From Anthoceros angustus (lineage: Eukaryota; Plantae; Anthocerotophyta), in contig MU008182.1 of NCBI GenBank assembly GCA_010909165.1, positions 930,001 to 994,000 on the forward strand: a stretch of 64,000 nucleotides of DNA, given 5' to 3'. The notes beneath the pieces are model-generated. The model did no database searches, had not been told where the DNA came from, and worked only from the letters and a program-made list of their open reading frames with translations. The first letter of the stretch is position 1. Each line of letters begins with the position of its first letter. This document shows positions 2,019 through 36,566 of this stretch, piece after piece. The translations under genes and the position numbers were made by a program.

Positions 2019-2260
2019 CTAGCCAGCTGGGTTTACATGACGCACATCCCTTCCTTGTACACTCGTTTTCCTGCCTTCTACACCTACATGGTTCCTGACA
2101 ATGTGACCTATCAAGGCAAGCCAGCAGATAGGTACAAGTATGTCATATTCATTCTGCTGAGGTGTTTCGCTAGACCTGCAAGCGATAGCCAATTTCTTGC
2201 TGTGCCACAAGAATGACCTCCCATGGACGAGTCCACATGTTGCAGTTTCTTCAATCTGGA
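2019..2260 (-). pseudogene. Out-of-frame degenerate DYW deaminase remnant downstream of PPR gene 1
   Basis: ORF 2019..2420 frame reads FLWHSKKLAIACRSSETPQQ...VEGRK...RHV, matching DYW LCGHSEKLAIA..TP.G....EGR.I...H. The catalytic Glu is Lys. Frame differs from the PPR ORF. Confidence 0.75.
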
Positions 2261-5133
2261 AAACACCTGCTTCCGCCTTGCTGAATGCCTTTATCCCCAA
2301 CCAGAAAGCTATGCACCAGCCCATCCGTGTCTGTCCACCAGCTCTGGCCTGGCTGCTTCCATGCCCTGGTTTGTACTCTCCTGGCCTGCACCTCCTGTGC
2401 CTGCTCCCACATGTGCGCACCAGTGTATATGTTCGACATCAACACATAGGCTGAGGCATCTTTCTTGTCTAGCTTCACTGCTTCATCGAAAGCATGGCGT
2501 CCCACTACCACGTTGCTCCACTTTCTACAACCACCCAACAGAGTGTGCCAGACTGCAGCAGTGGGCAGTATACGCATTGTCCTTGCTACAACTAGAGCCT
2601 CTTCCAATTGTCCTGCACGCCCAAGGAGATCCACCATGCATGTGTAGTGGTCGGCCGTGGGAGTGATGCCATAGAAAGTGCTCATAGACTCAAAGTACTC
2701 TCGCCCTTTGTTCACTAGACCCGTATGACTGCACACTGTTAGGACACTGAGAAACGTGACGGAGTCTGGCTGTACGCCATCCGCTGTCATTCTGAGCACC
2801 AAGTCAAACACCTCTGCAGTTTCTCCTTGACGGCTGTATCCTGCAATCAGTGCATTCCAGACGACCACATCTCTTTCAGGTAGTGCCTCAAACACCTGCT
2901 GTGCATCGACCATGCTGCCACACTTCCCATACATGTTTATCAAACTGCCAGCCAAAAGCACATCAGCATGAAGCCCTTGCTCCTTGATCTGTGCATGAAG
3001 CTGCCTTCCCAAATGCAAAGCCGCCACACTTGCACATGCCTGAAGCAGGCACAAAAATGTCACCAAATTGGGTGCAACAATGCCTTCTTCTTGCATACTC
3101 ACGTAAAGGCAAAGGGCATCCTGCCCCATTGCCTGCTGGGCATACGCTGCTATCATGGCACTCCACGTTACAACGTTTTTTTCACCAAGTCCATCAAACA
3201 CACCTCGAGCATCCACTATGCTGCCACACTTTGCATACATCGTTACCAAACTGGTAGCTACAAACACTTCAGTATCAAGTCCTCTTTCTCTGATCTGCGC
3301 ATGAAGCTGTTTCCCCTTCTCCAAAGCAGAGGGGCCTACACTTGCACATGCCTGCAAGAGGCATACATATGTCACAGAATTGGGAGCTGCCATGCCTTCT
3401 TCTTGCATAGCCCTATAAACCTGAAGGGCTTCCTGCCCCATGCCCTGCTGGGAATATCCTGCAATCATGGCACTCCAGGTCACTACATTTTTTTTATCAA
3501 GTCCATCAAACACACCCCGAGCGTCCTCTAGGCTGCCACACTTTGCATACATGTCTACCAAGCTGTTACCCACAAACACATCAGCCTGAAGGCCTTGTTC
3601 TCTAATTTCTGCATGAAGCTGCTTCCCCTTCTCCAACGCCAGGGTGCCCACGCTGGCACATGCCTGCAGGAGGGATAGAAATGTCACTGCGTCGGGTGCA
3701 GCCATGCCACCTTCTTGCATAGTTTTGTATAGACGAAGAGCTTCCTGCCCCATGCCCTGCTGGGAATATCCTGCAATCATGGCACTCCACGTCACAACAT
3801 TTTTCTGACTTAGCCTGTCAAACACACCCCGAGCATCTGCAAGGCTGCCACACTTTGCGTACATGTTTACCAAGGAGTTGGCTACAAACACATTAGCCTG
3901 AAGACCTTGCTCTTTAATTTGTGCATGAATCTGCTTCCCCTTCTCCAAAGCTGAGGCTCCTACACTTGCACATGCCTGCAAGAGGGATACAAATGTCAAA
4001 GAATCGGGTACAGCCGTACCCTCCTCTTGCATAGCCCTGTAGAGACGAAGAGCTTCGTGCCCCATGCCCTTCTGGGAATATCCTGCTATCATTGCAGTCC
4101 ACGTAACCACATTTTTTGGCCCAAGGCTGTCAAACACACACCGAGCATCTTCAAGGCTACTGCACTTCGCATACATGCTTACTAGACTCCCACCTAAAAA
4201 CACGTCAGCCTCAAGGCCTTGTTGTCTAATTTGTGCATGAAGCAGCTTACCCTTCTCCAAAGCTGGCGTGCCCACACTTGCACATGCCTGCAGGAGGCAA
4301 ACAAATGTCACAGAGTTGGGTACCACCACACCTTCTTCTTGCATAGCACTGTAAAGATGAAGGGCTTCGCGTCCCATCCCCTGCTGGGAGTACCCAGCTA
4401 TCATAGCGCTCCATGTCACCACATCTTTTTTACCAAGTCCATCGAACACTCTTTGAGCGTCTCCCAAGCTGCCACATTTGGCATACATGTACACCAAGCC
4501 ATTCCAAACAAACAGATTCGGCTCTATACCACTAGCTAACACATCAGCATGCACCTGCTGTCCAGATACCAAGTCGCCTCCCCTTGCGCAAGCCCGCAGG
4601 GCTGCTACAAACACATGGCCATTTGGCTTCACACTCGACCTGCGCATAATATGATACAGTCGTATGGCTTGCTTACCTTGTCCATGCTTATCATGAGCAG
4701 AAATTATGGCAGACCATGTGAATGCATCTGGATTGGCAACCATGGTGAACACATCTACAGCTTCTTGCAGCCTGGCATCAGAAGCATACATTCGCAGGAT
4801 GTGGTTGCACAAGAACGTGTCCGACTCATACCCCTTCTTCACTGTGAGAGCATGGACACGGCGCCCCAGACACAAATCCTTCTCAGCCACACACTTTTTC
4901 AGGACAGCATAAAACAGAGATCTGGGAATATCACAGGCTGCATGCACCAGGACTCCAAGAGCCTCAACGGCGTCCTTCAGCCTGCCCTGCTGACACAGTC
5001 CGTCCACGATTTCAGCCCGTACTCTCCTGTCGACTCCTGCACGCTCTGAGACGGTCACGATCATCCGGCATGCTCCAGTTGTATGCCGGGGCATTACGAC
5101 CCATCTCCGTATCCACAGCTGCCAGCAGAACAT
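2251..5133 (-). CDS. PLS-class PPR protein (E1-E2 + WW-type PG box, DYW truncated); organellar RNA-editing factor family; N-terminus probably frameshifted
   Basis: Intronless 960 aa ORF of P-L-S triplets (VVTWSAMIAGY / VTFVCLLQACAS / SLVNMYAKCGS), P2-L2-S2, E1, E2, ending KQPGQSWWTD..HSFLVGD. Confidence 0.93.
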   Translation of the reverse strand: MFCWQLWIRRWVVMPRHTTGACRMIVTVSERAGVDRRVRAEIVDGLCQQGRLKDAVEALGVLVHAACDIPRSLFYAVLKKCVAEKDLCLGRRVHALTVKKGYESDTFLCNHILRMYASDARLQEAVDVFTMVANPDAFTWSAIISAHDKHGQGKQAIRLYHIMRRSSVKPNGHVFVAALRACARGGDLVSGQQVHADVLASGIEPNLFVWNGLVYMYAKCGSLGDAQRVFDGLGKKDVVTWSAMIAGYSQQGMGREALHLYSAMQEEGVVVPNSVTFVCLLQACASVGTPALEKGKLLHAQIRQQGLEADVFLGGSLVSMYAKCSSLEDARCVFDSLGPKNVVTWTAMIAGYSQKGMGHEALRLYRAMQEEGTAVPDSLTFVSLLQACASVGASALEKGKQIHAQIKEQGLQANVFVANSLVNMYAKCGSLADARGVFDRLSQKNVVTWSAMIAGYSQQGMGQEALRLYKTMQEGGMAAPDAVTFLSLLQACASVGTLALEKGKQLHAEIREQGLQADVFVGNSLVDMYAKCGSLEDARGVFDGLDKKNVVTWSAMIAGYSQQGMGQEALQVYRAMQEEGMAAPNSVTYVCLLQACASVGPSALEKGKQLHAQIRERGLDTEVFVATSLVTMYAKCGSIVDARGVFDGLGEKNVVTWSAMIAAYAQQAMGQDALCLYVSMQEEGIVAPNLVTFLCLLQACASVAALHLGRQLHAQIKEQGLHADVLLAGSLINMYGKCGSMVDAQQVFEALPERDVVVWNALIAGYSRQGETAEVFDLVLRMTADGVQPDSVTFLSVLTVCSHTGLVNKGREYFESMSTFYGITPTADHYTCMVDLLGRAGQLEEALVVARTMRILPTAAVWHTLLGGCRKWSNVVVGRHAFDEAVKLDKKDASAYVLMSNIYTGAHMWEQAQEVQARRVQTRAWKQPGQSWWTDTDGLVHSFLVGDKGIQQGGSRCFPD

Positions 5134-5537
5134 CCACCCAAGCTGGCTTGTGAAATTTGTCTAGCCAGAGACCCAATTGACGACGGGTTTCCCTGCAAGG
5201 CCGGTCTGCTGCCAGAAATCCTGTTGCGCGAGGTGCATTTCTCGAGACAATCTTGCACCTTGGGGCTTCCTTGTCTGCCCGCGGTTGGCTCCTTGAAGTG
5301 GGATGTTCACAGCCGGAGTTGTTGCTAGAACACCCCATCGCTCACAGGAACACGAACTGCCTGAACTACATACCGTTGATAGGACGCAGAAGAGCTTGGA
5401 ATTCTGCTGGGACGAACCACAGATTTGGCCCAACATAATCTGCGCATCTGATGATGGGTTTTGGGACTTCTATCAAATGCAAGCAATTTAGTACTGCTGC
5501 AGACATATCTCAGAGCGAAGTGCAGTTGAGCTGAGAT

Positions 5538-8042
5538 ATGCGCAGTCCGGGCTTGGCGAATTCATGGCCATGTCAAGCAAGATCGCTGCGCCAAAGGGAT
5601 GGACGGGGATGCCTCAGCGAGGGTCGTGGACGGGAGAACTTGGGCCGAAACCGCCATTTGCCTGGCGTGAGGCGGAGGCAGTCTCTGGAGGTGCTCTGGT
5701 TGAACAAGTGCTGCCGGCCAACTGCGGTGGGTGCGCTGCTCGCTGCTCTGGAAACGGGGAAGGAAACGTCTCGCTGCGTCTCCGTTCCCGTTTCCAGACC
5801 AGCTAGCTTGCCGGGCGGGCCTGCAGGTGACGATTTGGGCATGACGGCTAGCACGGTGAGCAGGCTATGTGATGAGGACCGTCTCATTGAGGCAGTCCAG
5901 GGATTGGAAATTCTGGTGCAGACGAAGCGTTTTGTTTCCAAGGCTGTCCTGTACGCCGTCCTGAAGGGCTGTGTAGCGAAGAAGGAGCTTGTGCTGGGTA
6001 GCCGAGTGCATGCTGTGGTGGTGAGAAAGGGGTTTCAGTCAGACACGTTCCTGGGCTTCCACATTCTGCGAATGTATGCCTCCCATGGCAGGTTGCAAGA
6101 CGCGGTGGATGTGTTTGAAGCAGTGGCCAAGCCTGATGCTTTTACGTGGTCGGCCATCATTTCTGCCCATGTTAGAAACGGGCGAGACAAGGAGGCCATA
6201 GAACTGTATCATGGGATGCGGAGGTCTGGTGTGAAGCCGGATGGCCATGTGTTTGTGGCAGCTCTTCAAGCTTGTGCAAGGGGGTTGGATTTGAAGAGTG
6301 GGCAGCAGGTGCATGCTGATGTATTGGCCAGTGGCGTCGGGGGTAATTTGTTTGTCTATAGTTGCTTGGTGGACATGTATGCTAAATGTGGCAGCTTGGA
6401 GGATGCTCAGGGTGTGTTCGACGGGCTTGGTCAGAAGGATGTGGTGACGTGGACTGCCTTGATAGCAGGGTATTCTCAGCAGGGCATGGGGCAGGAGGCC
6501 CTTCGTCTCTACAGTGCCATGCGAGAGGAAGGCATGGCTGTGCCCAATTCTGTGACTTTCGTGTGTCTCCTCCAGGCATGTGCAAGTGTGGGCACCTTGG
6601 CGTTAGAGACGGGGAAGCACCTTCACACTCAGGTACGAGAACGGGGATATGAAGGGGATGTGTTTGTAGCCAACAGTTTGGTGAACATGTATGCTAAGTG
6701 TGGCAGCTTGGAAGACGCCCAGAGGGTGTTCGATGGACTTGGTCACAAGGATGTGGTTACGTGGAATGCCATGATAGCAGGGTATTCCCAGCAAAGGATG
6801 GGTGTTGAAGCGCTGCGTCTCCACAGTGCTATGGTGGAAGAAGGTATGGCTGTACCCACTCCCGTGACATTTGTGTGCATTCTCCAGGCATGTGCAAGCG
6901 TGGGCACTCCAGCTTTGGAGAAGGGGAAGCATGTCCATGCACAGATTAGAGAGCGAGGACTTGAGGCTGATGTCTTTGTAGCCAGCAGTTTGGTGAACAT
7001 GTACGCAAAGTGTGGCAGCTTAGACGATGCTCAGAGTGTGTTTGACGGACTTGGTCAGAAAGATGTGGTGACATGGACTGCCATGATAACAGGGTATTCC
7101 CAGCAGGGCATGGGGCAGCAAGCTCTTCGTCTCTACAGAGCTATGGTAGCAGAAGGCATGGCTGTACAGGATGTGCCCACATTTGTGTGCCTCCTTCAGG
7201 CTTGTGCGAATGTAGCTGCTTTGCATCTGGGAAGGCAGTTACATGCGCAGATTGTAGAACAAGGTCTTGAAACAGACGAGGTTGTGGCAGGCAGTTTGAT
7301 TAATATGTATGGAAAGTCGGGAAGTATGGTTGAAGCGCAGCAGGTGTCTGATGCATTGCCCAGAAGAAATGTTGTTATCTGGAATGCACTGATTGCAGGC
7401 TACACCTCTCAAGGACGGTATGACGTTGTCGTCGACTCGGTCCAGAGGATGAGAGGTGATGGCATGCGTCCAGACAACGTCACATTCCTTAGTCTACTTA
7501 CAGTGTGCAGTCATGCGGGTCTAGTGGAGGAGGGGTGGGAGTACTTTGAGGCTATGAGCAGACACTATGGCATCACTCCCACTGTAGACCACTATACATG
7601 CATGGTGGATCTCCTGGGCCGTGCAGGACAACTGGATGAGGCTCTAAGATTGATAACATCAATGCCTGTGTCGCCTAATGCTGTGGTTTGGTACACCCTG
7701 TTGGGTGCTTGTCAGATGTGGAGCAACGTGGAGGTGGGGCGTCATGCTTTTAACGAAGCAGTGAAGTTAGAGGAAACAGTTTCTGCGGCATATGTATTGA
7801 TGTCCAACATATACACCAGCGCCCAAATGTGGGAGCAAGCACAGGAAATGCAGGCCCGGAGAAAACGAATGAGGGCATGGAAGCAGCCAGGTCAGAGCTG
7901 GTGGACAGACCAGGATGGACTTGTGCACAGTTTTTTGGTTGGGGACGAGAAGCATCCCTACATTCAGAGCAAAACTCAAGTCGGTGTTTCCAAACTGGGA
8001 AAAGAACCATGCCGCCACCTGGACTCGTGTAAGGATGGATAG
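5538..8042 (+). CDS. PLS-class PPR protein (E1-E2 + WW-type PG box, DYW truncated) with degenerate N-terminal PDF-like motif
   Basis: 834 aa ORF with R/S-rich N-terminus, RHLPGVRRRQSLEVLWLNK, PLS triplets and KQPGQSWWTDQDGLVHSFLVGD. Confidence 0.93.
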   Translation: MRSPGLANSWPCQARSLRQRDGRGCLSEGRGRENLGRNRHLPGVRRRQSLEVLWLNKCCRPTAVGALLAALETGKETSRCVSVPVSRPASLPGGPAGDDLGMTASTVSRLCDEDRLIEAVQGLEILVQTKRFVSKAVLYAVLKGCVAKKELVLGSRVHAVVVRKGFQSDTFLGFHILRMYASHGRLQDAVDVFEAVAKPDAFTWSAIISAHVRNGRDKEAIELYHGMRRSGVKPDGHVFVAALQACARGLDLKSGQQVHADVLASGVGGNLFVYSCLVDMYAKCGSLEDAQGVFDGLGQKDVVTWTALIAGYSQQGMGQEALRLYSAMREEGMAVPNSVTFVCLLQACASVGTLALETGKHLHTQVRERGYEGDVFVANSLVNMYAKCGSLEDAQRVFDGLGHKDVVTWNAMIAGYSQQRMGVEALRLHSAMVEEGMAVPTPVTFVCILQACASVGTPALEKGKHVHAQIRERGLEADVFVASSLVNMYAKCGSLDDAQSVFDGLGQKDVVTWTAMITGYSQQGMGQQALRLYRAMVAEGMAVQDVPTFVCLLQACANVAALHLGRQLHAQIVEQGLETDEVVAGSLINMYGKSGSMVEAQQVSDALPRRNVVIWNALIAGYTSQGRYDVVVDSVQRMRGDGMRPDNVTFLSLLTVCSHAGLVEEGWEYFEAMSRHYGITPTVDHYTCMVDLLGRAGQLDEALRLITSMPVSPNAVVWYTLLGACQMWSNVEVGRHAFNEAVKLEETVSAAYVLMSNIYTSAQMWEQAQEMQARRKRMRAWKQPGQSWWTDQDGLVHSFLVGDEKHPYIQSKTQVGVSKLGKEPCRHLDSCKDG

Positions 8043-8044
8043 AA

Positions 8045-8450
8045 ATACATCTCAGCTCTTTCAGCTACCCATAGAACACTGCTTCCTGTATGCCTGCAAT
8101 CACCTACCAGGAAAGTGCCCAACTCCTGCTCATGCTCGATCCAGCTCTGGCCAGGCACCTTCCACGCACCTGCGTTATGACTCAGCTCCTCTTATGTTCG
8201 TTGCAGATCCCCACACGCCAGCTGGGCATATATGTTGGACATGAGAACATGAGCTGCAGCTTCTCATGGCTCTTCTGTCACAGCACTGTCGGATGCTTGC
8301 CGTCCCAAGGTTACAATGGCATGCTTCCATCACGCAGAGAGTATACACACCCACAGATCCAGGCGAGGCAGCATTGGCATACCTACAAGCAATTCTTGCG
8401 GCAAGAACCCCCTGGAGAAATTTACCAAATCCATCAGCTCCCCACGATGG
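8045..8450 (-). pseudogene. Relic of S2-E1-E2-PG box of a different ('SWIEH' type) PPR gene
   Basis: Fragments LMDLVNFSRGFLPQELLVGMPMLPRLDLWVCILSA and PGQSWIEHEQELGTFLVGD in broken frames; resembles the C-terminus of the gene at 40029-43109. Confidence 0.75.
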
Positions 8451-8675
8451 CTATGTGACCGCGATAAATTCGACAAAAATCGTGAGGCTGCAAATGTAGC
8501 GCCGCTGAGGCTGACAACTTGTCGACCAGATCCTTCAGATGTCTGAGACTCTGAAGGTACAGCAATGGGACTATCATCGCAAACGCTCACATGTCTCTCA
8601 TTTGGAGTGCAGCGAACCTCACTCCCATGTTTAGAACAACTGCGCTGGCCGGCCTTTGAATCAAGTTCCTTTCCA

Positions 8676-11600
8676 TCAAAGATCCGCAACCGAAAATCTA
8701 TGCACCAGTCCATTCATGTCTGTCCACCAGCTCTGGCCTGGCTGCTTCCATGCCCCAATAGTTTTTCTCCGAGACTGCATCTCCCGCGCTTGCTCCCACA
8801 TCTGGGCACTAGTGTATATGTTGGACATCAACACATACGCTGCGGAATCTTTCTCGTCTAGCTTGACAGCTTCATTGAAAGCATACCGTCCAACATCCAC
8901 GTTGCTCCACTTCTGACAGGCACCCAATAGAGTCCGCCAAAGTGCAGCATCAGGCGGTACAGACATTGTCTGGACCAAAGCTAGTGCCTCCTGCAGTTGT
9001 CCAGAACGACCCAGAAGATCCACCATGCATGTGTAGTGATCCGCCGTGGGAGTGATGCCGTAGTGCTTGCTCATGTCCTCAAAGTATCCTCGGCCCTTGT
9101 TCACGAGACCCGTGTGACTGCACACTGTGAGTACACTGAGAAACGTGATGCTGTCTGGCTGTATGCCATCCTCTTCCATTTTGCAAACCAGGCCAAACAC
9201 CTCTTCACTGTCTCCTTGACGGGTGTATCCTGCGATCAGTGCACTCCATGTGAAAACATCTCTTTTGGGCAATGCCTGAAACACCTGCAGCGCATCAAGC
9301 ATGCTGCCACACTTCCCATACATGTTTATCAAACTGCCAGCGACAAGCATATCAGTATGAAGCTTTTGTTCTTTGATCTGTGCATGAAGCTGCCGCCCTT
9401 GAGGTAAAGCTGCCACACTGGCACATGCCTGAAGAAGGCACACAAACGTCACAGAATTGGGTTCAACAATGCCTTCTTCTTGCATTCTCCTATAAAGCAC
9501 AAGGGCACCCAGCCCCATTCCCTGCTGGGAATATCCTGCTATCATGGAATTCCATGTCACAACATCTTTTTGAACTAGTGCATCAAATACGTCCTGGGCT
9601 TCCTCTAGGCTGCCGCATTTTGCGTACATGGTTACCAAGCTGTTGGCTACAAACAAATCAGCCTCAATCCCTTGTTTTCTGATCTCTGCGTGAAGCTGTT
9701 TCCCTTTCTCCAAGGCTGGGGTGCCTACACTTGCACATGCCTGCAGGAGGCACACAAATGTCACAGAATCAGGTACAGCCATGCCTTCTTGTTGCATATC
9801 TCTGTAGAGGCTAAGGGCCTTTTGCCCCATCCCCTGCTGGGAATATCCTGCTATCATGGAACTCCATGTCACAACATTCTTTTCACCAAGTCCTTCAAAT
9901 ACTCTCTCAGCATCCTCTAGGCTGCCACATTTCGCATACATGTGTACCAAACTGCTGGCTACAAACACTTCGCCCTCCAGTTCTAGTTCCCTAATTTGTA
10001 CATGTAGCTGCCTCCCCTTCTCCAGAGCCGGGGTCCCCACACTTGAACATGCCTGCAGGAGGCACACAAATGTCACAGAATTAGGTGCAACAATGCCTTC
10101 TTCTTGCATAGCCCCGTAAACACGAAGGGCTTCCTGCCCCATGCCTTGTTGTGAATATCCTGCTATCATGGCGCTCCAGGTCACCACGTTTTTATGGCGC
10201 AGACCGTCAAACACGCCACGAGCAACCTCTATACTTCCGCACTTCGCATACATGTTCACCAAGCTGCTGGCTACAAACCAGTCAGCCTCAAACCCGCATT
10301 TGCTAATTTCTGCATGAAGCTGCTTCCCCTTCTCCAAAGCCGTGGTGCCCACACTTGCACAAGCCTGGAGGAGGGACCCAAACGTCACAGAATCAGGTGC
10401 AGCCAGGCCTTCCTCTTGCATAGCCCTGTAAAGACCAAGGGCTTCTTGCCCCATGCCCTGCTGTGAATACCCTGCTATCATGGAACTCCAAGTCACTACA
10501 TTCTTTACACCAAGTCTGTCAAACACGTACCGAGCATCATCGATGCTGACACATTTTGCATACATGTTTACCAGACTCCCACCTACAACTACATCAGCCT
10601 GAAGGCCTCGTTCTTTAATTTTTGCATGAAGTTGTTTCCCCTTCTCCAAAGCGGGGGTGCCCACACTTGCACATGCCTGCAGGAGGCACACAAATGTCAC
10701 AGAATTGGGAGCGATGATGCCTTCCTCTTCCATAGCCCTGTACAGATGAAGGGCTTCCTGCCCCATGCCCTGCTGGGAATATCCGGCTATCAAAGCATTC
10801 CATGTCACCACATCCTTTTTACAAAGCCCGTCAAACAATCTCTGAGCTTCTTCCAAGCTGCCACATTTTGCATACATGTCCACCAAGGAATTCCATACAA
10901 ACAAATCATGCTTCATGCCACTAGCCAGCACATCAGCATGCACCTGCTGCCCAGACTTCAAGTCTCCTCCCCTTGCACAAGCCTGAAGGGCTGCCACAAA
11001 CACATGTCCATCTGGCTCCACACTCGAGCCACGCATCCCCTTGTACAATTCTATGGCCTGCTTATCTTGCCCGTGCTTAACATGCCCAGAAATCACGGCA
11101 GACCACGTGAAGGCATCTGGTTTGGCAATCATACTGAACACATCCATAGCCTCTTGCAACTTGGAATGCGAAATATACATCCGCAGGATGTGATTGCACA
11201 AGAACGTATCCGCCTCATACCCCTTCTCCACGGCGAGAGCATGAACACGGCGACCCAGAGTTAGATCCTTCGCAGCCACGCATTGCCTCACGACGGTGTA
11301 AAACACAAATTTGGTAACACGACAGTCTGTGAGCACCAGAACTCCTACAGCCTCGATGGCCTGAGCGAGCTGTCCCCGCTGGCACAATCTGCTCACAGTT
11401 TTAGCGGTGACGCCCTTTCCACTCCCTGCAGCTTTGCCAGGTTCTCCATCCGGCACGCTCCAGTTCAATGTCGGCCAACCACCCACCTCCATTTCCAGAG
11501 TAGCCAGACATACTGTTATACGGGCTGGCTTTCTTGCCAAGGTGCTGCATCTCCTGGGTTGCGCTAGACTCCTGGAATTCACGTGAACGGGACTACTTCC

Positions 11601-16381: not shown

Positions 16382-17829
16382 TTATTGTTCACCTTTGTTC
16401 TCCGTCTCAGACTCTGGACCCAAAACCTCGTTTGCCCGTCTTTTCAAGCGCAATTCATACAAGCTTTTGGCTAAAGCCCTCCGACGTGCCACACCTTGTC
16501 TATAACCAGCCCTTGCATATGGGTTTTGGTCTCCACCATCGGCATGGTCTTCCACATTCACTATATTTCGTCTTTGCCCATGCTTATTATATGCATTGTT
16601 GATTTCATACAAAGTCTCTACAGCTGCCCTTGAAGCTTCTTGTTGCAGTGCAGTCCGCCGCTGATGAGTGCTAGAAGCGGAGCTTTGAAGTTCAAGAGTA
16701 GTTTGATTGAACCATTCATCCTCAAAGCCATCATTACGCTCCACACACATGTTATGCAATACTAGGCATGCACTAACAACACAAGGCACATTTTTTAACT
16801 TCATATCATTTCTTTTTAGCAAAATCTGAAACCTACTTTTCGATGCCGTATGTCCTTTCCACCACCATTCGTACTAGATTGAATAAAATTCCAATTGGCT
16901 TCCTCCGATGTAAATCCATCTTTATGCCCACGGAATGGAGTTAATAGATGTACTCGAGGCCAATAACCTGCATCTCCCACTAAGGCAAACTCATCTAGCA
17001 TACCTGCTGCACATCTTTTTCCAATTTCCGACCGCTCCCACAAGTTCCAATCATTCATGCTACCTGCCCAACCGAAATCATAATCCCAAACCATTCCTTT
17101 TGCATTCACTACTAATTGAAGCAAGCAACTATGAAACCCCTTCCTACAATAATAGTCAACATGGTACTCTTTTGGTGCTATGATGGGAATATGGCTACCA
17201 TCTACTGCTGCTATAACATAAGGAATTCCTCTCAATGCCTCAAACTCAGTTGCATACATCTCCATCTTACTTCTGATGGCCATTGGATATACACATCATG
17301 CAAGATAGCCCTAAGAGCATTGCAAAATTGTAATACGATACCTTGAACAGTAGATGTACCATACCGATACAGGGCAGCAATAGTGGACAACCTATCCCCA
17401 CCAGCCAAGCGCATTAAACTAATGGATACTCGAGCATCCACTGGGACTGCATCTCTAGTAATTCTATCTTGTTTTTGAAGTATAGGTGCCAACTTCATAC
17501 AAATGAAGTCAAAGGTAGGTCTACTTACACGCATCCTGTTCTTGAACACTAGTGCATCCACTTAGATGTCCTTAACAGTCTCTGCATAAAGTGGAGGGCT
17601 ATCTTGAGCATCCTTATGCAGCATGGCCAACATGGCATCTGGACTATTCAACAATAGGAGAGAGTAGCTCGCACATTGTGGCACAAACACACTCTCCCCA
17701 CCAGAACAACACACAAATTCCTCATACATCGCTCTCAAAGTCATACCTTTGGCCTCCTCACAACACTCTTGTATTGCATAGCTAGAGGACAAGCTATGAT
17801 CTGAGCTTGTCCTCTGTGAAAGACGAAAG
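16382..17829 (-). pseudogene. Harbinger (HARBI1-like) DDE transposase with frameshifts and stops
   Basis: FKNRMRVSRPTFDFIC, IAAVDGSHIPI, YYCRKGFHS, GWAGSMND, LVGDAGY, VVERTYG, ACLVLHNMC spread over at least 3 frames; stop at 17562-17564. Confidence 0.92.
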
Positions 17830-18836
17830 CTAGCTTGGAAGAAATGACGAGCCTCTTGCATTGTGAAGTTATGGATGATGTCTTTGTCCTCTATCTTGTT
17901 ATAGCATATCTGATGTAGCCTCTTGCATGGTCTCAAGAACCTGTGCTCCTCGTAGTGGCGCGGCCTTCGCCTACCGACATTTTGGAATGGCGTAAGTGAT
18001 TTAATGTTGTGGATAAAGAGGTTTTTGAGCATCTCTCTTGCATCCTTGACTTGTGGTAAGGCAAATATATTCTTGTAGTGTAACTGTCACTCAATCTGAC
18101 TATTTGTCTGGTATCTTGTGGTCATTTTGTACACACAGATTACGTTTTGAAGGGTAGTGAGGGAACTCCCTTTCAGTGTTGGCCTTGCACTATTTATGCT
18201 GCCTAACGTCATGGTCGTGTATTGCAACATACTTATGTGCATGCGTTCTTTTATAGTACTTTAAGAAAATTATTAATTTTGATAACTTCTAGAAGCTGAG
18301 GATAGCCGTTGTCCCATTGCCTTTTGTTGTTAGCTTTAGTCACCTATTTGTCTGTAGTCCTTCTGGGTTGCTGGAGACCATAAAAGCTCAAAGGGATCGC
18401 TTTTGTGACCTTCATTCATTTTATGCAGATGGATAATACTCCAACCATAGGAAGTGTGTCTACGTCAGTAGAGGATAAGCATCGACTGGCCCAAGCATCT
18501 CTTGCCGATAATTGCGAAAAGTACTTCTCAATCCCCGTGTCCACTCGTATCGATGGTTGTTGACTGTAATGGGTTCTGACAATGTCAGAATGTCAGACGT
18601 ACACATGCTTGTATTTGGACACTTATGATCCTTTTTCTTTTTGTTTAGCAGTGTGATATTTCCTACGATGTTCCCAAAGTACGTGGAGAAGCTTGTGGAA
18701 CAGCAACGAATTTGGAGCAGGCATAGAAGGGGGTGGACGAAAAACAAGATACGCAAGCTCCCACTTTGTTGGAGCAACAGCTTGTGGCTGATCTTGTGGG
18801 AAACGCAGATGTAAAAGGGGATTGGCAGCGGGAGGG
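17830..18836 (+). pseudogene. Partial intron-retaining duplicate of the adjacent UBC gene with internal deletion
   Basis: Colinear with 20380-20752 and ~21360-22013, including introns; frameshifts present; catalytic exons missing. Confidence 0.93.
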
Positions 18837-24476: not shown

Positions 24477-25744
24477 CTAGGATTCGGATGTTTCGTCCTC
24501 TTTCTCATCCTCTACTTTGAAAAATGTGTATGACAAGATTAAGGAGTTGATACCATCCATCCTTGGATCCGTGGCGAATTCTGGGTCAATGTAGAAGAAG
24601 ACCTGCAGTCAACAGTTATAACCAGGAGACATCTTGTCAGGCCTGTGAAGTTTAGGACCCAAGGTCACAGGCTCCAAGGAAACACCACTCACAGGCATGT
24701 CAAGCTTCTCTCCGGCACGAAGCCGCTGCTCCTCGAAACAAAAGCACTGGATCTTGTTGAAGTAGGCTCCAGCCTGCATGGGCACACCAAATGGCAGAAG
24801 AATTTCCGCTTCTGATAACTACAACCTTGCTTCGAGCCAGGCTTCTGAAAGTGATGCTGCCTACCCTCATAGGAGTGATATTGTACGTAGACACTCCCGT
24901 GATGGACTTGGAGCTGGTGTTTTCTGCTGTGTAGAAAGCCAGAGTGCTCTGCCCTGGCCTCACCTTCATCTACATACCCGCATCCAAACAACAGAGAAAA
25001 AGAGACCAGTATGGACCAACCACCATTCCTCGTAACCACAAAACAAGACAGTGAACTCCAAATACACATACCTCCCGTTGAGTCGGCGTGAACTTCCAGG
25101 GCATACCATCCGCCACATCCGCATTAAACTGCACTACCAGCTCCCTACCGAGAGACACATTCACAAACCCTATCGATTAGGGTACGCCGAGCCTTCCCCC
25201 CACAAATTCACTCCCCTCCACAGCATCCAAGGCAGCAGCAGGAATTCACCTGACCGGCGCGGCGGAGGCTTCAGCATCCTGCCTTGCAATCTTTTCCTCC
25301 ACTGTCTGCAAGCAGCCACTGAGCGGATGAACCAGTTCCTTTGCCACGACAGGACCGGAAACCCATGGGCACAGCAAATCCTTCATGTCACAACCAGCTC
25401 ACCTCACGCCGCTTCACAGTCCCCCCATAACCAGTGGCCTGGCAGAACTTCCGGTACAGCGGCACGGAAGCGTACGTGCATCCCACCATAGCCACAACCA
25501 AGGCGGTGAGATACATCAGCGTTCCCTGCGAATTTTTCTGCCCCGGATGTGCCCTGGCAGCAGCCCCATTTACAAAATTCCTCCTCAGAGCTGGGCTCCC
25601 AGGATCCCCTCCAGCCTGCGAGCTGAACCTACAACCTCCCCCTGCCCCTGCCACTCCAGCCTTGCACTCCGCTCCCAAAATCCACCCTCGTCGAGCACCC
25701 GCATCCAAACCCCACCACACCCTTCGACCGCAATGCCGCAACAT
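24477..25744 (-). CDS. COX11: Cytochrome c oxidase copper chaperone COX11, multi-exon
   Basis: [71 protein letters not shown]. Confidence 0.95.
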
Positions 25745-26449
25745 TCTCCCACTCCAGCTCCGCACCTTCCCCTGTTCCGCGCATCAGCTCTCAGCTCCCC
25801 TCGACTCGAGCTACTCCTCTTGTCAATCCATACCCATCGAGATCAAGCCAGGATCAACAAGCAAGCAGCAAAAGTCGAAATTTCTCTGAATCGCATAAAA
25901 TCGACTAACAGTAACTCGTTCCCGCTCCCGAATTAGGGCAGCAATACATTCAGATGCTTTCATCTTCAATTTGTCTGAGTGCGAAGCAGATTCCTTCCAC
26001 CGTGTGTAATAAGGACAACTGTGGATTGCACAGAAGAGAGCGAAAATGGAAAAGGACAGCATTGCAGGTAACCGAGAGATGCTGTCCGGAGACGATGTGA
26101 ATCAAAACGACACAAAATGCATTAGGCAATTGAGGCAAACAAAGCATCGTGAACGAAAGAGAATTTTACACAACCGTCAGCAGAAGTGCAGACGCAGCGC
26201 TCCGGACGTGGAATGCTGGCCAAGTTCTCCACATTCGGCTTCTAGGTGCAAGACATTCGACATTCGGCAAGCGACTGCTCGAACTTGCTGACGGGGGAGA
26301 GTGATCTGCTGTCGCAGCAGCAGCGAAAGAACCAGCATTGTACAAGACAGGATCTAGCCGGCATCACACAATGACCCCAGCCGCGGAGGACATCAGCGAA
26401 TTGGGTTTCAAGCGCGCGAGCTTGAAGGGAAAGGACTAAATTCAATAAT

Positions 26450-27417
26450 CTAATTCCCGGGGACGAATTTGGTGGCATAGGCCCAGGCGTTGTTGTTGGA
26501 GGGGTCGGCCAGGTGGTCGAGGAGGTTCTCGATGGGGCCCTTGCCGGTGACGATGGCCTGCACAAAGAAGCCAAAGGCGGAAAACTGGGCCAGTCTTCCA
26601 TTCTTGATCTCCTTCACCTTGAGCTCGGCGAAGGTGTCGGGGTCGTCGGCGAGGCCCAGGGGGTCGAAGGCGCCGCCGGGGTAGAGCGGGTCGGTCACCT
26701 CGCCCAGGGGCCCGCCCGCAATGCGGTAGCCCTCCACCGCCCCGATCAAGATCACCTGCACGGCCAGCACGGCCAGGATGCTCTTTGCGTGGATGAGAGC
26801 CGGGTTGCCCAGGTAGTTGAGCCCCTCCTCGGAGAAGATGACGGCGCCGGCCTTGAACCACACGGGCTCCTGGATGGGCACCCCGTACTTGGCCAGGATC
26901 TCGGGGGTCACGATCCCGAGCGTTCCCAGCAAGGCCCACCGCGAGTGGATCACCTCCAGCTCCCGGTTCCTGGCGAACGTCTCGGGATCAGACGAGAGGC
27001 CTGCCGTGTCCCAGCCGTAGTCGCCCGGGAACTCGCCCTTGAGGTAGCTCGGGGGCTCGCCGGAGAGCGGGCCGAGGTACTTGGGCCTGTCGGGCCCGTA
27101 CCTGCGCAACACACCATTCACGATTCATTCCCACGAGAATCATTCATTCTATCAATCCATCAATCAATCAAACAATCAAACAATCAAACAATCCCGCCTT
27201 GCCGGGCCGGCTGCATTGCATCCCACTGGAATGCAATTGAGAAGGGGGCGATGGAGTACCAGATGCTGTCGGACTTGGAGGCCTGCGTCTTGCGCATGGT
27301 GACCCTGGCGTCCGCAGCCCTGCCGCCGTTCACCTTCCTGGAGAGCTCGGAGGGCGCCTTCAGCACGGCCTGGCCGGCGAAGGTGGCGCTGCTGATGCAT
27401 GCCGAGACGGCGGCCAT
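26450..27417 (-). CDS. Lhcb: Major light-harvesting chlorophyll a/b protein (Lhcb1/2/LhcbM type), 269 aa precursor, 2 exons; mature part Met/Cys-free
   Basis: Exon1 27417-27260, GT-AG intron 27259-27102, exon2 27101-26450. Transit peptide ends VTM-RKT. Motifs [46 protein letters not shown]. Confidence 0.97.
27152..27193. repeat. (CAAT/CAAA)n microsatellite in the Lhcb intron
   Basis: tcaatccatcaatcaatcaaacaatcaaacaatcaaacaatc. Confidence 0.85.
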
Positions 27418-27518
27418 GGCTGCTTCCGCCGGTGCCCGGGGAGGAGAAGAGAGCAGGCGACGGAGACAAGTCAGCTGGAGGACGCGATGCCGATGTCCGT
27501 GAAATCACTGCTCGCACA

Positions 27519-27680: not shown

Positions 27681-28441
27681 AGGCGAGGCGACAACATAAG
27701 CCTGCACCAACGCTCCTTCATGTTGCATCGCCTGTGAGCGTCTAAGGGGGCTGAAGTTTTAAGGCTTGAAGGACTCGACCACTTCAATTTGGCAGCATTA
27801 GCTCTACTCTATGTAAGCCAGTTCCACCACACTAAAAAGGAGGAGATATGTTTGAAGTTACATTGGATAAGGTTCGGTGTGAAGATAATGTCCTTGAACA
27901 AGTATAGTCTTGTCACCTCTTACTGTGCAGTAAAATGAATCTGTAGTAGCCTCAAGGTTCTATTTTTTCAGTTTATGGAAACATTGATGGGTAGTGTTGG
28001 AGTTGTGGGGTACAGGATCCGAGAAAGAAGGAGAGGAGAAGGAGTCTATGCGACAAAGATCTGTATGATTCAGATTAAATTTATGTCTCGTTATATGTAG
28101 AAATGTAAACCTTCAAAAAAATAAGAAGGCGGTGATTAATAAAGGTTTACCTACAACAATAACAATCAAATTTCATGCACATAAGTTGCACACTTGCTTC
28201 CTAAAATGGAATTCTTTTCCCATAGTCATCTCTAAATGTATATACTTATATCAAATAATTGTATTTCCTACACTTTTCTGTACAAAACAATTTGTTACAT
28301 CAAGTTTTTGTAGTACTTAAATCGATTTTGGGACGATTTACTGGAAACAAAGAGATGAGATATAACAGCCCATCTTCTATACTATGTATTGCTAAAGAGA
28401 GTTTCATTGCTAAAGGCACCATTACCCTATCTAACCTCATT

Positions 28442-29734
28442 TCAAGTAGTAAAGATTATTTCAAGTAGAAGCTTTACGAAAAGGTCCAAAGGATCTTCCG
28501 ATATAGTAGATAGTTCTAAATAAAATTTCATATATATACCATTAAATCTTGTTTGATCTTCATGAGTTTTCAAGCGCAACATATTTAACAATTCAGCTCT
28601 CATAGAATCCAAATCAGTTTGTTGTCCGTCATGCAATAGGTAGTTTTGTATTTTTGCTAGCAATTCAGTTCTTTTGAAAAGGAAAATTTTCATTCTCCCC
28701 GCCAAATCAAGTCCATCAGGACCGAAATCCATTGACATCTCATCATCATCCTCGTCATCATCATCATCATCGTCGGCATCATCTGTATCGTCATCATTTG
28801 TATCATCATCATCATCATCGTCGGCATCATCTGTATCGTCATCATTTGTATCATCATCATCATCATCGTCGGCATCATCTGTATCGTCATCATTTGTATC
28901 ATCATCATCGTCGGCATCATCTATATCGCCATCATTTGTATCATCATCATTTGCGTCTTCATCATCTTCATCATCATCATTTGCGTTGTCATCATGTGCG
29001 TCGTCATCATCTGCATCGTCATCATTTGTGTCGTCATCATTGGCATTGTCATCATCCGCATCAAATGCGAGCCTCAAAATTACACCATTAGGATCAAAAT
29101 CCATTGACATCTCGTCATAATACTCGCAGTCATTATCTGCATAGTCATCATCTACATCGTCATTATTTGTGTTGTCATGAACAAGGTCGTCATCATCCGC
29201 ATCAAATGCGAGCTTCAAAATTACTCCATTAAGATCCAAATCCATTGACATCTTGTCATGATGCTCGCCGTCATCATCTGCATAGTCATCATTTGCATCA
29301 TCATCATCCGCCTCCTCATCATCTGCGTCCTCATGAGCGAGGTCATCATCATCCGCATCCCCATCATGCTCGCCGTCATCCTCTACATAGTCATTATCTG
29401 CATCTGCGTCCTCATGAGTGAGGTTGTCATCATCCGCATCGTCATCATCAGCGATATCATCATCATCATCCTTGATTGACATTTCTCCATCATCCTCCAT
29501 TGCTATCTCATCATCATCCTTGTCATCATAGTTTTCGATTAACATCTCTTCATTATGCAACCATGGCATGAGACATGTCTCGCGAAATAAGTGAGGACAT
29601 GTATTTATTTGTGGAATCTCTTTCGCTAGTTTAATGTTCTCTCTTGAGATAAAATTTTTCCTCTCTTTAGTCTCATTATATTTATATAGGGTTGTTGTCA
29701 ATTTTTCTTCTCCTGGTGGAACATTAAAATCCAT
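28442..29734 (-). CDS. Intronless Asp-rich acidic orphan ORF (~430 aa from ATG 29734)
   Basis: Open frame across an imperfect (GAY)n core with non-repetitive N- and C-terminal segments in AT-rich DNA; recurring EMSMD..GVIL.LAFDADDD motif. Confidence 0.45.
   Translation of the reverse strand: MDFNVPPGEEKLTTTLYKYNETKERKNFISRENIKLAKEIPQINTCPHLFRETCLMPWLHNEEMLIENYDDKDDDEIAMEDDGEMSIKDDDDDIADDDDADDDNLTHEDADADNDYVEDDGEHDGDADDDDLAHEDADDEEADDDDANDDYADDDGEHHDKMSMDLDLNGVILKLAFDADDDDLVHDNTNNDDVDDDYADNDCEYYDEMSMDFDPNGVILRLAFDADDDNANDDDTNDDDADDDDAHDDNANDDDEDDEDANDDDTNDGDIDDADDDDDTNDDDTDDADDDDDDDTNDDDTDDADDDDDDDTNDDDTDDADDDDDDDEDDDEMSMDFGPDGLDLAGRMKIFLFKRTELLAKIQNYLLHDGQQTDLDSMRAELLNMLRLKTHEDQTRFNGIYMKFYLELSTISEDPLDLFVKLLLEIIFTT
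28735..29530. repeat. Imperfect (TCA)n/(GAT)n repeat with higher-order duplications
   Basis: Near-identical ~40-50 bp units at 28755-28950 and ~120 bp units at ~29040-29290. Confidence 0.92.
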
Positions 29735-31800
29735 TTCGTGGACGATGAAGCAGCCAAAAGCCAACTTGCGTTCAAATGAACTTAAAGAGGTATGTGCAGA
29801 TAGATCTCACACACAGAAGAAACTAGCGCCCGTCGCACTGCAAAGCAACAAAGCTGCCATGCCCAAATGTCATGGTCAGCATGTAGGCTGTTGGCATCAC
29901 AGGTCAAAAATGAACGGTCAAACCACTAGCTATAGGCTTGGCAAAGACTACTGCCTACAATAGGCCTAGAGCCCGCGAACAGAAAAACGGGCTTGGAGTT
30001 TGTGTCCTCTTCACCGGAATGCGACCCCAAGATGTTGCAAAAGAAAGTTTAGCGAAGAAGTATGGCTGCCTCTTTATTAGACAAACATCAACAGTCCACT
30101 TAGCTTGGAGTGTTGAGCTACATATATAGCCTATGGTGTCCGCCACCTCTCGCTATTGCATACTGCTTAGCTCTATGGAGCACGCGCCAAGGTAATATAA
30201 CTATTTAGTCCTTGGCCTTTGGCAATAATGCCTGCTTGGAAATAATCCTTTATTTCCTTGGCCCTTGGTAATGATGAGACTCATTACCTATTTCCTTGGT
30301 CTTCGACCCACGTTTATATTGTTTATGGCTAAGTTAATGTTACAAGCTTAGTTCTAGAGCCAAACTTATAACACAACACCTAGTGTTAAAAATAATGATC
30401 TTCTCACCTCCTTTTATATCCTTCAAGCTCACCCCGTATAAGCAATTACTAATTGTAAGAATACATATAATCATATATCTATTTAACTACCCATTAAGGC
30501 AGTTTCTTCTTCTGAAATTGCATGCCACCACATGCAGCCATGCTTGCAAATATGCAAACAATTCACCAGGCAGATACTATATGTAGCTTTTATTTTCACT
30601 TGTTACTTTTTTCAGTAGAACCTATAAAGGTAAGATGTTTTTGTTTCACATCTCTAAAGTATATTCTCTATTTCATGGTGAAGGGAACTTAATGTGATCT
30701 TTGGGACCTAATTTTGGAATATCTAAAATAGATTGGATAATCTATCTCTATTTCTTTTTGAGTATTTATTATAATTAATTAATTAATTAATTGATCATTT
30801 ACAAGAATACCACCAAAACAGCAGATGAAAGGCATGACCACATCCTTCCAGAGCTGTCCTCACTCAAAATTCTATATTTTATGTTTTAAATAATTATTTT
30901 GAAATTTATTTATAAAATTTAATATTATTTTTATAATAATTATCTATAATTTTTTGAAAATTTAAATAAATATAAGTTCGCGCTCAACAAATTGTTTTAG
31001 AATAGCTTAGTTCACCCCGGAGATCTTGGCTTTTGGCTTATCAACAGGACTCATGGGCAGCATTACCACGTTTGCATCCTAGAACTAGCACATGCTTGAA
31101 TTCCTTACCTACCGCTTGAACTTCTCAATGGCTTCTCTCTCTTGTTTCAAATACTTACCGGTTGAACTACTCTCTCGGGGCCAACTTACTTTTGACTTGG
31201 GTGACCAGGTGGTGCAAATTTGGTGGTAATAAACCCTCCCCAATATAGTTTGTGAGCATGTCATCGTCAACCCTCTGGGCTGGGCGGCGTAGGGATTCGT
31301 GATTGCCAAGGTTTACAAGTACACCCCATGCATGAAGGCCATGCTTTCATTCCCCTTACTATTGAGAACGTGAATGGACTTCATGGTTGGGGTGTGGTTG
31401 GGCTCAAGTTTTGAACAAAACCAAAATCGAGTCACACCAATATTGCTTCAAACAAGTTCATGTATTGAACCATGGTTGCTTGTATGGTATGTATGAATTA
31501 CAGTTTCAACCAACCATGGGCTCAGACCAAAACTTCCCCCTTTTATCGAGTTTGGCATGAAAACTGATTTGAAGTTAAAATTCGTATATAGTACAAGTAA
31601 AATAATTAATCTAAGTAAAAAAAATTTCTTCTTCTTTTACTACTACCAAGCTTAAGAAAAAATCATTTGTGTTAAGACGGTTAAGTTTGACTCAGGTTCC
31701 ATTACGTACGAGATAAAGTTTCGTGACCGTAGTTCATGAGCTGCATTTGAACAAACTTTGTCCATCGCCCTGCTGAGGGCGTTGGCAAATGCTGTTTGGA

Positions 31801-31886
31801 GGATGACTTTGAATGCGGGAGATGCTGTAGGATGACTTCGAATGCGGGAGACGCTGAAGGACGACTTCGAGTGTGGGAGACGTTGC
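31801..31886. repeat. 29-bp tandem repeat x3
   Basis: GGAYGACTTYGARTGYGGGAGAYG(C/T)TG starting at 31801, 31830, 31859. Confidence 0.85.
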
Positions 31887-31960
31887 ATCTTCAGCTGTGG
31901 TGGTAAGTAGGCCCTTCCTTACTCTTGACTACGACATGTTGGGGGCGGTAGACAGCTTCA

Positions 31961-32100
31961 CGGTAGACAATTGTGGGGGCTAGTTCCCCTTAACCTGGGC
32001 CTTGTAGTGGGTTGTTCCCAACCACCATGGTAGACAATCGCGGGGGATAATTACCCTTAGCCTGGGCCTTGTAGTGGGTTGTTCCCCACCACCACGGTAG
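31961..32100. repeat. ~67-bp direct duplication
   Basis: GGTAGACAAT..GGGGG.TA.TT.CCCTTA.CCTGGGCCTTGTAGTGGGTTGTTCCC.ACCACCA twice. Confidence 0.88.
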
Positions 32101-35800: not shown

Positions 35801-36566
35801 CGGTCTCACTCATCGTACCGCCTTCAAGCTCTTGAGTTTCTCCTCCCTCGTGGTTGGAACGCCCGTTACTTGAGAATCCGTATCACCGTCCAGCCCCGTA
35901 TCAAGGTGTTCGCTCTTCGGCTTTGCGCGTGACTTGGCTGGCTTGGCTGCCTTCCTCAAATCCTCTCCATCTTTCACCACCGGGCCTTCCTTACTCCCTT
36001 TCTTCCTCTTCCTCTTCTCTTCAGGCGGGGACGCCCTGATCAGCGCAGGAAACAAGAAAAAGACGGAATCTCATTACACGTGGCAGCAGAATCAACAATT
36101 CCCTCCTCCGCGTCACTTTACAGCAACAAACCGCACACGGCTCGGCGAAATACCTGCTGCATTCCTGGTGCGGCATGGTGGCCGCACTGGGAGTGCTGTC
36201 GCTGGGAACCGGACCATCCGCCTCCCCGTCGCTGGCCGGCGGCTCCGCATTCAGGTCGGCAAAACCTCCCTCCCTGGTTGCGCGCAGCCCGGGCTGCGCC
36301 TGCGAGCTTGCCGCCACACCGTTCACATGGCTCATCCCTCCCTGCTGATACCCGCCCTGCTGCGCATACGGATTCTGATGCTGCTGCTGCTGCTGCTGAT
36401 GTTGCTGCTGCTGCTGCAGCAACGCCTGCCTGTGCAGCGCCTGCTGGTGCGCCGCCTGCTGCTGCAGCATCTGCTGGTGCGCAGTCCCTGACGGAACCAA
36501 GCCCCTGGGATCCATGGCCTGCCTCACGGACCTACCTCCCTGCCAGCGCCGAGGTCCCTCCTCCAA
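32839..36566 (-). CDS. Conserved plant TPR-repeat protein with N-terminal polyQ, multi-exon
   Basis: ADLNAEPP, REEKLKSLK/GLMHVARKLPKNAHAQFFLGLMFQRLGQP, IWNTLGLLLLRTGR, HIWANLAAAY, AVPWHQLGLH, SWSNLG; consistent GT-AG exons; start could be 36566 or 36515. Confidence 0.85.

Follow-up and report, generated by a model that had tools for sequence, protein, structure and literature searches.

No membrane protein on Earth is more abundant than LHCII, and large amounts of amino acids are bound up in it. Within the window, the whole 64,000-nucleotide stretch of Anthoceros angustus DNA analyzed here, one gene on the minus strand is predicted to encode a mature LHCII chain that contains neither methionine nor cysteine. 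The locus raises the question of whether this protein is a genuine major LHCII and, if so, why a hornwort would keep it. The first-pass annotation, made from the sequence, had read a two-exon LHCII gene with a processing site between VTM and RKT and a mature chain of ~228 amino acids with no Met or Cys; the spliced gene model confirms this reading. The gene consists of the following features:

27417..27260, minus strand: exon 1, with the ATG at 27417; present without differences in a spliced contig of transcriptome run X1
27417..27295, minus strand: predicted transit peptide of 41 amino acids, within exon 1, ending in VTM
27259..27102, minus strand: single intron of 158 nt, GT..AG; joints that skip 158 nt occur in runs X1 and X16
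27101..26450, minus strand: exon 2, 216 codons plus stop; covered by run X1 contigs with zero differences
27418..27485, minus strand: 5' UTR of at least 68 nt; a run X1 contig extends to 27485 with 0 differences
26200..26449, minus strand: 3' UTR of at least 250 nt; run X1 contig 26200-26552, 0 differences

Beyond the transit peptide, exon 1 encodes the first 11 mature residues and contributes two bases of the Trp codon that precedes YGPDR, which is split by the intron. The entire Chloroa_b-bind domain, from YGPDR through to the C-terminus, lies in exon 2, which ends with the stop codon at 26450-26452. The precursor contains 269 amino acids and the predicted mature chain, starting with RKT, contains 228, with Met and Cys both at zero. 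The precursor has three sulfur residues (M1, C7, and M41), all of them inside the predicted transit peptide; by homology with Lhcb1/2, cleavage would occur after Met41 and expose RKT as the mature N-terminus. GC3 of the coding sequence is 0.93, compared with a GC content of 0.47 in the intron, and this combination of high GC3 with a 47% GC intron is what a live gene of this genome looks like. The intron also contains an AT-rich, microsatellite-like run (27140-27215) composed of imperfect GATTGTTT/GATTGATT repeats.

Exon 2 alone was the query in the database searches, and the joined protein served for local counts and for tblastn against the window. PF00504 matches exon 2 over profile positions 1-162 of 162 (E 1.2e-47), solved LHCII chains match it at E about 1e-121 over residues 1-215, and seed-plant LHCII proteins are about 80-83% identical to it. 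Residue numbering is collinear with that of spinach and pea LHCII. At the collinear positions, the chlorophyll ligands and helix ion-pair residues Y24, E65, H68, R70, G78, Q131, E139, E180, N183, R185, Q197, and H212 are all kept; position 119, a backbone ligand, is Ile and not Val. The trimerization motif WYGPDR is present (the spliced model reads SIW-YGPDR), as is the basic N-terminus RKT with a Thr that, judged by sequence, is putatively phosphorylatable. These features identify the protein as a nuclear-encoded major LHCII of the Lhcb1/2/LHCBM type, which would be expected to fold, bind pigments, and trimerize as ordinary LHCII does. The ligands, WYGPDR, an RK(T/S) N-terminus, and overall length are common to the hornwort protein and canonical Lhcb1/Lhcb2 (pea and spinach; PDB 2BHW and 1RWT). 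The hornwort protein differs from these canonical forms in the replacement of all five sulfur residues, in its membership of a separate clade, and in the changes of Trp128 to Leu, Asp111 to Asn, and Ser160 to Ala.

To place the replacements, we compared 119 single-domain canonical, 22 sulfur-free, and 24 sulfur-poor homologues. Each of the five sites carries Met or Cys in 109-119 of the 119 canonical proteins. The replacements are as follows:

26930..26932, minus strand: Met73 to Leu, TTG (RWAML to RWALL); Met in 116/119 canonical, Leu in 22/22 sulfur-free homologues
26912..26914, minus strand: Cys79 to Ile, ATC; Cys in 111/119 canonical, Ile in 21/22 sulfur-free homologues
26744..26746, minus strand: Met135 to Ile, ATC (VILMG to VILIG); Met in 119/119 canonical homologues
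26585..26587, minus strand: Met188 to Gln, CAG; Met in 119/119 canonical, Gln or Leu in sulfur-free homologues
26576..26578, minus strand: Met191 to Ala, GCC; Met in 109/119 canonical, Ala, Asn, Val, or Thr in sulfur-free homologues
26759..26761, minus strand: variable Thr/Cys130 (the WAT/WAC site) is Val, GTG; Trp128 of this motif is Leu

Position 135 is Leu or Ile in all sulfur-free homologues, and the changes at positions 188 and 191 together convert RLAMFSMF to RLAQFSAF (26576..26587, minus strand). Over the core, Met plus Cys total 0 in the hornwort protein compared with 4-8 in canonical LHCII. The codons that the first-pass annotation had named for every replaced sulfur site, together with its LAV at the WAC/WAT site, proved exact on re-reading; the chlorophyll ligands, RKT, intron, and GC-rich codons that it had described as intact were all found, the high GC3 included.

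When the hornwort protein is compared with four canonical LHCII proteins (from a moss, two liverworts, and Magnolia), the sulfur sites differ in 5/5 cases and the other sites in 33-43 of about 211 (one-sided Fisher p = 1.4e-4 to 4.6e-4). The first-pass annotation had argued against decay of the gene and had recognized that equally fast divergence at non-sulfur positions would speak for relaxed selection. Its argument stands: changes center on the sulfur sites (5/5 versus about 37/211, p about 2e-4). Judged from these alignments, the changes are directed at sulfur sites beyond chance.

The hornwort gene has relatives with the same property. Eleven of the best 120 matches to exon 2 lack Met and Cys throughout the core. 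This set includes a protein from the transcriptome of another hornwort, Nothoceros aenigmaticus (P0011, 95% identical), that of Calypogeia fissa (a liverwort), three Sphagnum entries, and Coccomyxa viridis; the Riccia fluitans copy has one Met left. Wider searches revealed zero-sulfur proteins in Coccomyxa subellipsoidea, [Myrmecia] bisecta, and several environmental sequences, and three proteins of Mesotaenium endlicherianum (Zygnematophyceae) are likewise free of sulfur. A profile search with the sulfur-free alignment returned mostly fused tandem LHCII predictions, with Mesotaenium as the sole new sulfur-free addition. The first-pass annotation had read the protein as a convergent elemental-sparing replacement; the replacement is not special to hornworts, since sulfur-free forms also occur in Mesotaenium and trebouxiophyte algae and since liverworts and Sphagnum contain this isoform too, with its intron in the same place, and form one clade with the hornwort gene. 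Chlamydomonadales and trebouxiophytes contain a graded series of proteins with 1-3 sulfur residues and with Leu73 and Ile79 in common, one cluster of which includes Volvox VOLCADRAFT_102070; the sulfur-poor forms of Chlamydomonadales share both of these residues with the hornwort protein. Among the best matches, which contain canonical LHCII from Marchantia, ferns, and seed plants, there is no sulfur-free orthologue from these plants, and such an orthologue is probably absent from them.

At Met188 and Met191, hornworts and liverworts have Gln...Ala and Sphagnum has Leu...Asn. In Sphagnum P0030, P0067, and P0068, the Met before the predicted cleavage site is gone as well (ARVQA-RSK versus VTM-RK) and the RKT phosphorylation-site motif reads RSK. 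A further type of LHCII has no Cys and four Met (MM-S/T-MMA); it is found in Riccia (P0165 and P0167), where it occupies a long branch of its own (support 100/99), and in the environmental sequences P0177, P0186, P0187, and P0093.

Descent was analyzed in a tree of 74 rows from which the six sulfur columns had been removed; the LHCII alignment is short, gene conversion between paralogues can mimic the pattern, and Chlamydomonas reinhardtii LHCBM9 was left out of the set. In this masked tree, the hornwort gene pairs with that of Nothoceros (support 100/91) and the liverwort group joins next (100/97); the Sphagnum forms group together (100/97). Hornworts, liverworts, Sphagnum, and four environmental rows constitute a clade of 16 (91/84) that is separate from 22 canonical LHCII proteins of bryophytes, ferns, and seed plants. 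A clade uniting Mesotaenium with the bryophyte sulfur-free forms is not rejected (p-AU 0.18). A single origin of all Leu73/Ile79-type proteins, chlorophyte and streptophyte, is rejected with the sulfur columns masked (p-AU 0.0004), and for this reason the resemblance to chlorophyte LHCBM9-like forms is likelier parallel than orthologous. By this same AU test, in a set from which C. reinhardtii LHCBM9 is absent, membership of the hornwort gene in an LHCBM9 orthologue group is rejected. The convergence proposed in the first-pass annotation is thus supported in one part, independence from the chlorophyte sulfur-poor forms, and not in another, as the isoform is shared across bryophytes, probably by descent.

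An intron at the same codon is present in the hornwort gene, in Calypogeia (L001), and in Sphagnum (L002). In the latter (locus L002 of Sphagnum jensenii OZ023703.1, at 1-937 and 4001-5426 of the locus), a canonical and a sulfur-free LHCII gene stand in tandem on the same strand, with the sulfur-free gene about 3 kb downstream of the canonical one. The canonical tandem gene is of the MCCMMM type (84.7% identical) and has the same intron, so the intron position does not discriminate the sulfur-free clade. The topology suggests that the isoform is probably older than the split of the bryophyte lineages, and it may be older than land plants.

Outside the sulfur sites, the hornwort protein is 90% identical to that of Calypogeia and 85% identical to that of Sphagnum. 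Between liverwort and moss, sulfur-free orthologues share 85.6% of non-sulfur residues compared with 91-92% for canonical LHCII. These comparisons indicate that the sulfur-free isoform is somewhat faster-evolving yet clearly constrained. Relaxed selection was considered and rejected, since conservation is high outside the sulfur sites (85-95% identity to orthologues of other bryophyte lineages).

Expression data consisted of assembled contigs with depths, and contig depth is a poor measure of expression. Run X1 derives from the same species as the window (97% of sampled words present, and a matching species label). It contains three contigs with zero differences from the gene: 26200-26552, 26523-26827, and 26813-27097 joined to 27256-27485. 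The joint between 27097 and 27256 corresponds to exact removal of the 158-nt intron, which establishes that the gene is transcribed and spliced as modeled. Lack of expression, which the first-pass annotation had named as a point against its reading, is therefore not observed: the spliced transcript is found at a depth of about 11-17. The contigs of the sulfur-free gene in this single sample have depths of 10.9-16.6; paralogous LHCII contigs, with 24-50 differences, have depths of 332 to 9,854. We read these values only as showing that sulfur-free LHCII is a minor transcript in the run X1 sample. A related species (run X16) has a spliced contig of the orthologue, with 34 differences and a depth of 773. 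The in-frame translations of loose contig ends from runs X2 and X16 include MFSMFG, IWASQVILMG, and QVVLMG, so related hornworts also express canonical Met-bearing LHCII; this removes the concern, raised in the same annotation, that all paralogues of the lineage might share the substitutions. In A. angustus itself, a canonical-type LGPFSGETPS paralogue is visible over a stretch that does not include its sulfur sites.

Antenna proteins that economize on sulfur provide a frame for these findings. In the cyanobacterium Calothrix/Fremyella, cpc3 encodes a sulfur-depleted phycocyanin, a case in which an abundant antenna protein is swapped for a sulfur-poor paralogue. The same sparing logic is proposed here for hornwort LHCII, in an unrelated protein family and unrelated organisms. 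Chlamydomonas reinhardtii LHCBM9 contains 4 sulfur residues where its sisters contain 6-7, and its induction when sulfur is withheld has been attributed to this low content (PMC4344250). In Parachlorella kessleri, LHCB1 1779_t rises 2,050- to 5,106-fold without sulfur, whereas the other LHCB genes fall or remain flat (PMC4724957). As long as sulfate is supplied, LHCBM9 and Parachlorella 1779_t show hardly any expression, and both rise more than 1,000-fold when it is missing (PMC4724957; PMC4344250). The hornwort gene resembles these two in being a major-LHCII paralogue whose product contains fewer Met and Cys residues than those of its sister genes; unlike LHCBM9, which keeps 4 sulfur residues, its product has zero. 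According to a proposal by Natali and Croce, two Met that LHCBM9 has retained may be essential (PMC4344250). A conserved and expressed LHCII that has none speaks against this proposal.

On balance, we favor the view that the hornwort gene is a major LHCII gene belonging to an old, bryophyte-wide isoform lineage without Met or Cys, which is kept as a sulfur-sparing spare. Since liverworts, peat mosses, and some green algae have genes of this kind as well, the spare is probably old and did not first arise in hornworts. According to this model, when sulfate becomes short, expression of sulfur-free LHCII would rise and canonical LHCII, with 5-8 sulfur residues per chain, would be degraded. The largest thylakoid protein pool could then be rebuilt at zero cost in Met and Cys, and the sulfur set free would become available to other proteins. 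The SURE core GAGAC is not enriched in the window (109 occurrences versus 117 expected); only two copies, at 27463 and 28085, are close to the gene. We advance a broader account more tentatively: streptophyte sulfur-free LHCII may predate the bryophyte split, serve as a spare during sulfur starvation, and have been lost in vascular plants, with trebouxiophytes having reached zero sulfur independently. The streptophyte lineage possibly dates to the common ancestor with Zygnematophyceae. The literature accessible to us, from which subscription journals were mostly excluded, yielded no account of a sulfur-free or sulfur-sparing LHCII in bryophytes or land plants, in agreement with the statement in the first-pass annotation that none was known there.

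A zero Met/Cys pattern would also fit selection for oxidation resistance, the main rival to the sparing model, because Met and Cys are the most oxidizable residues. The protein could be a stress antenna, deployed during photo-oxidative or nutrient stress in general, from which these residues were removed as targets of singlet oxygen and peroxide near chlorophyll, with sulfur saving as a side effect. An earlier suggestion relayed by Natali and Croce, that LHCBM9 acts as a quencher of photosystem II (PSII) supercomplexes, lends this idea some appeal (PMC4344250). However, other oxidizable residues are not reduced in number (5 Trp, 9 Tyr, and 3 His remain), and the sole lost Trp, at position 128, reflects an alga-like state that is not specific to the isoform. 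We therefore regard hardening against oxidation as unlikely to explain the pattern.

Lhcb3 and particular LHCBM types occupy a fixed structural place in the supercomplex. The hornwort protein could similarly be a constitutive minor isoform with a fixed place, which descended from alga-like ancestors and whose lack of sulfur has no adaptive role. Asn111, Leu128, and Ala160, alga-like states that were changed in canonical land-plant LHCII, are kept in this isoform. Moreover, the orthologue is transcribed in run X16 without known sulfur stress at depths of 773-927, which may reflect constitutive expression and would count against a role as a spare. On the other hand, the three alga-like columns are the only ones besides the sulfur columns that part sulfur-free from canonical streptophyte LHCII, so that fixed differences fall almost entirely at sulfur sites. 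Met or Cys has been gained outside the six canonical columns in 0 of 46 sulfur-free or sulfur-poor homologues (0/22 and 0/24, respectively) compared with 27/119 canonical ones, counts that come from kin sequences and are not independent. In addition, there are two replacement sets (Gln/Ala and Leu/Asn), and the chlorophyte and streptophyte forms are probably of separate origin, which together suggest that sulfur content itself has been selected. A fixed structural role without benefit from sulfur loss thus appears quite unlikely. A decaying or neutrally drifting duplicate that lost Met and Cys by accident would suit the low contig depth in run X1 and the somewhat faster change at non-sulfur sites between liverwort and moss, but is highly improbable given the open frame, correct splicing, high GC3, intact ligands, close identity to orthologues of other bryophyte lineages, and the centering of changes on sulfur sites.

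Conservation and expression of the sulfur-free isoform imply that the near-invariant Met and Cys residues of LHCII, including Met73 and Met188, are dispensable, which is useful for understanding and engineering the folding and pigment binding of light-harvesting proteins. If the sparing model for the streptophyte lineage is correct, LHCII would function without any Met or Cys, and elemental sparing in this highly abundant membrane protein would be ancient and have evolved repeatedly among the relatives of land plants. To our knowledge, a few green algae and cyanobacteria are so far the only organisms in which elemental sparing of the antenna has been demonstrated. Should the gene respond to sulfate, land plants would have to be added to them; the strategy could then be studied in hornworts, Riccia, and Sphagnum as tractable systems, and the question would arise of why vascular plants apparently lost the sulfur-free isoform.

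Several minor features surround the gene. Directly upstream lies a block of low GC content (28001-32000; 0.39 versus 0.50 for the window), inside which an open reading frame of 440 amino acids (28442-29764, minus strand) has no Pfam match. A Pfam search of the neighboring open reading frames 28445-29764 (minus), 25385-25933 (plus), 35934-36488 (plus), and 17565-18032 (minus) identified no family. On the other side of the gene, inside or just beyond the 3' UTR, the plus strand at 26180-26290 encodes an LHC-like relic that consists of a helix-3-like segment, GRGMLAKFSTFGF, followed by a stop and VQDI. A search at the DNA level for an inverted repeat between the relic and the coding sequence gave nothing meaningful. 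The relic is 43% identical to model residues 211-247 (E 0.002 by tblastn against the window) and may have been left behind by an inverted LHC duplicate or be a product of chance.
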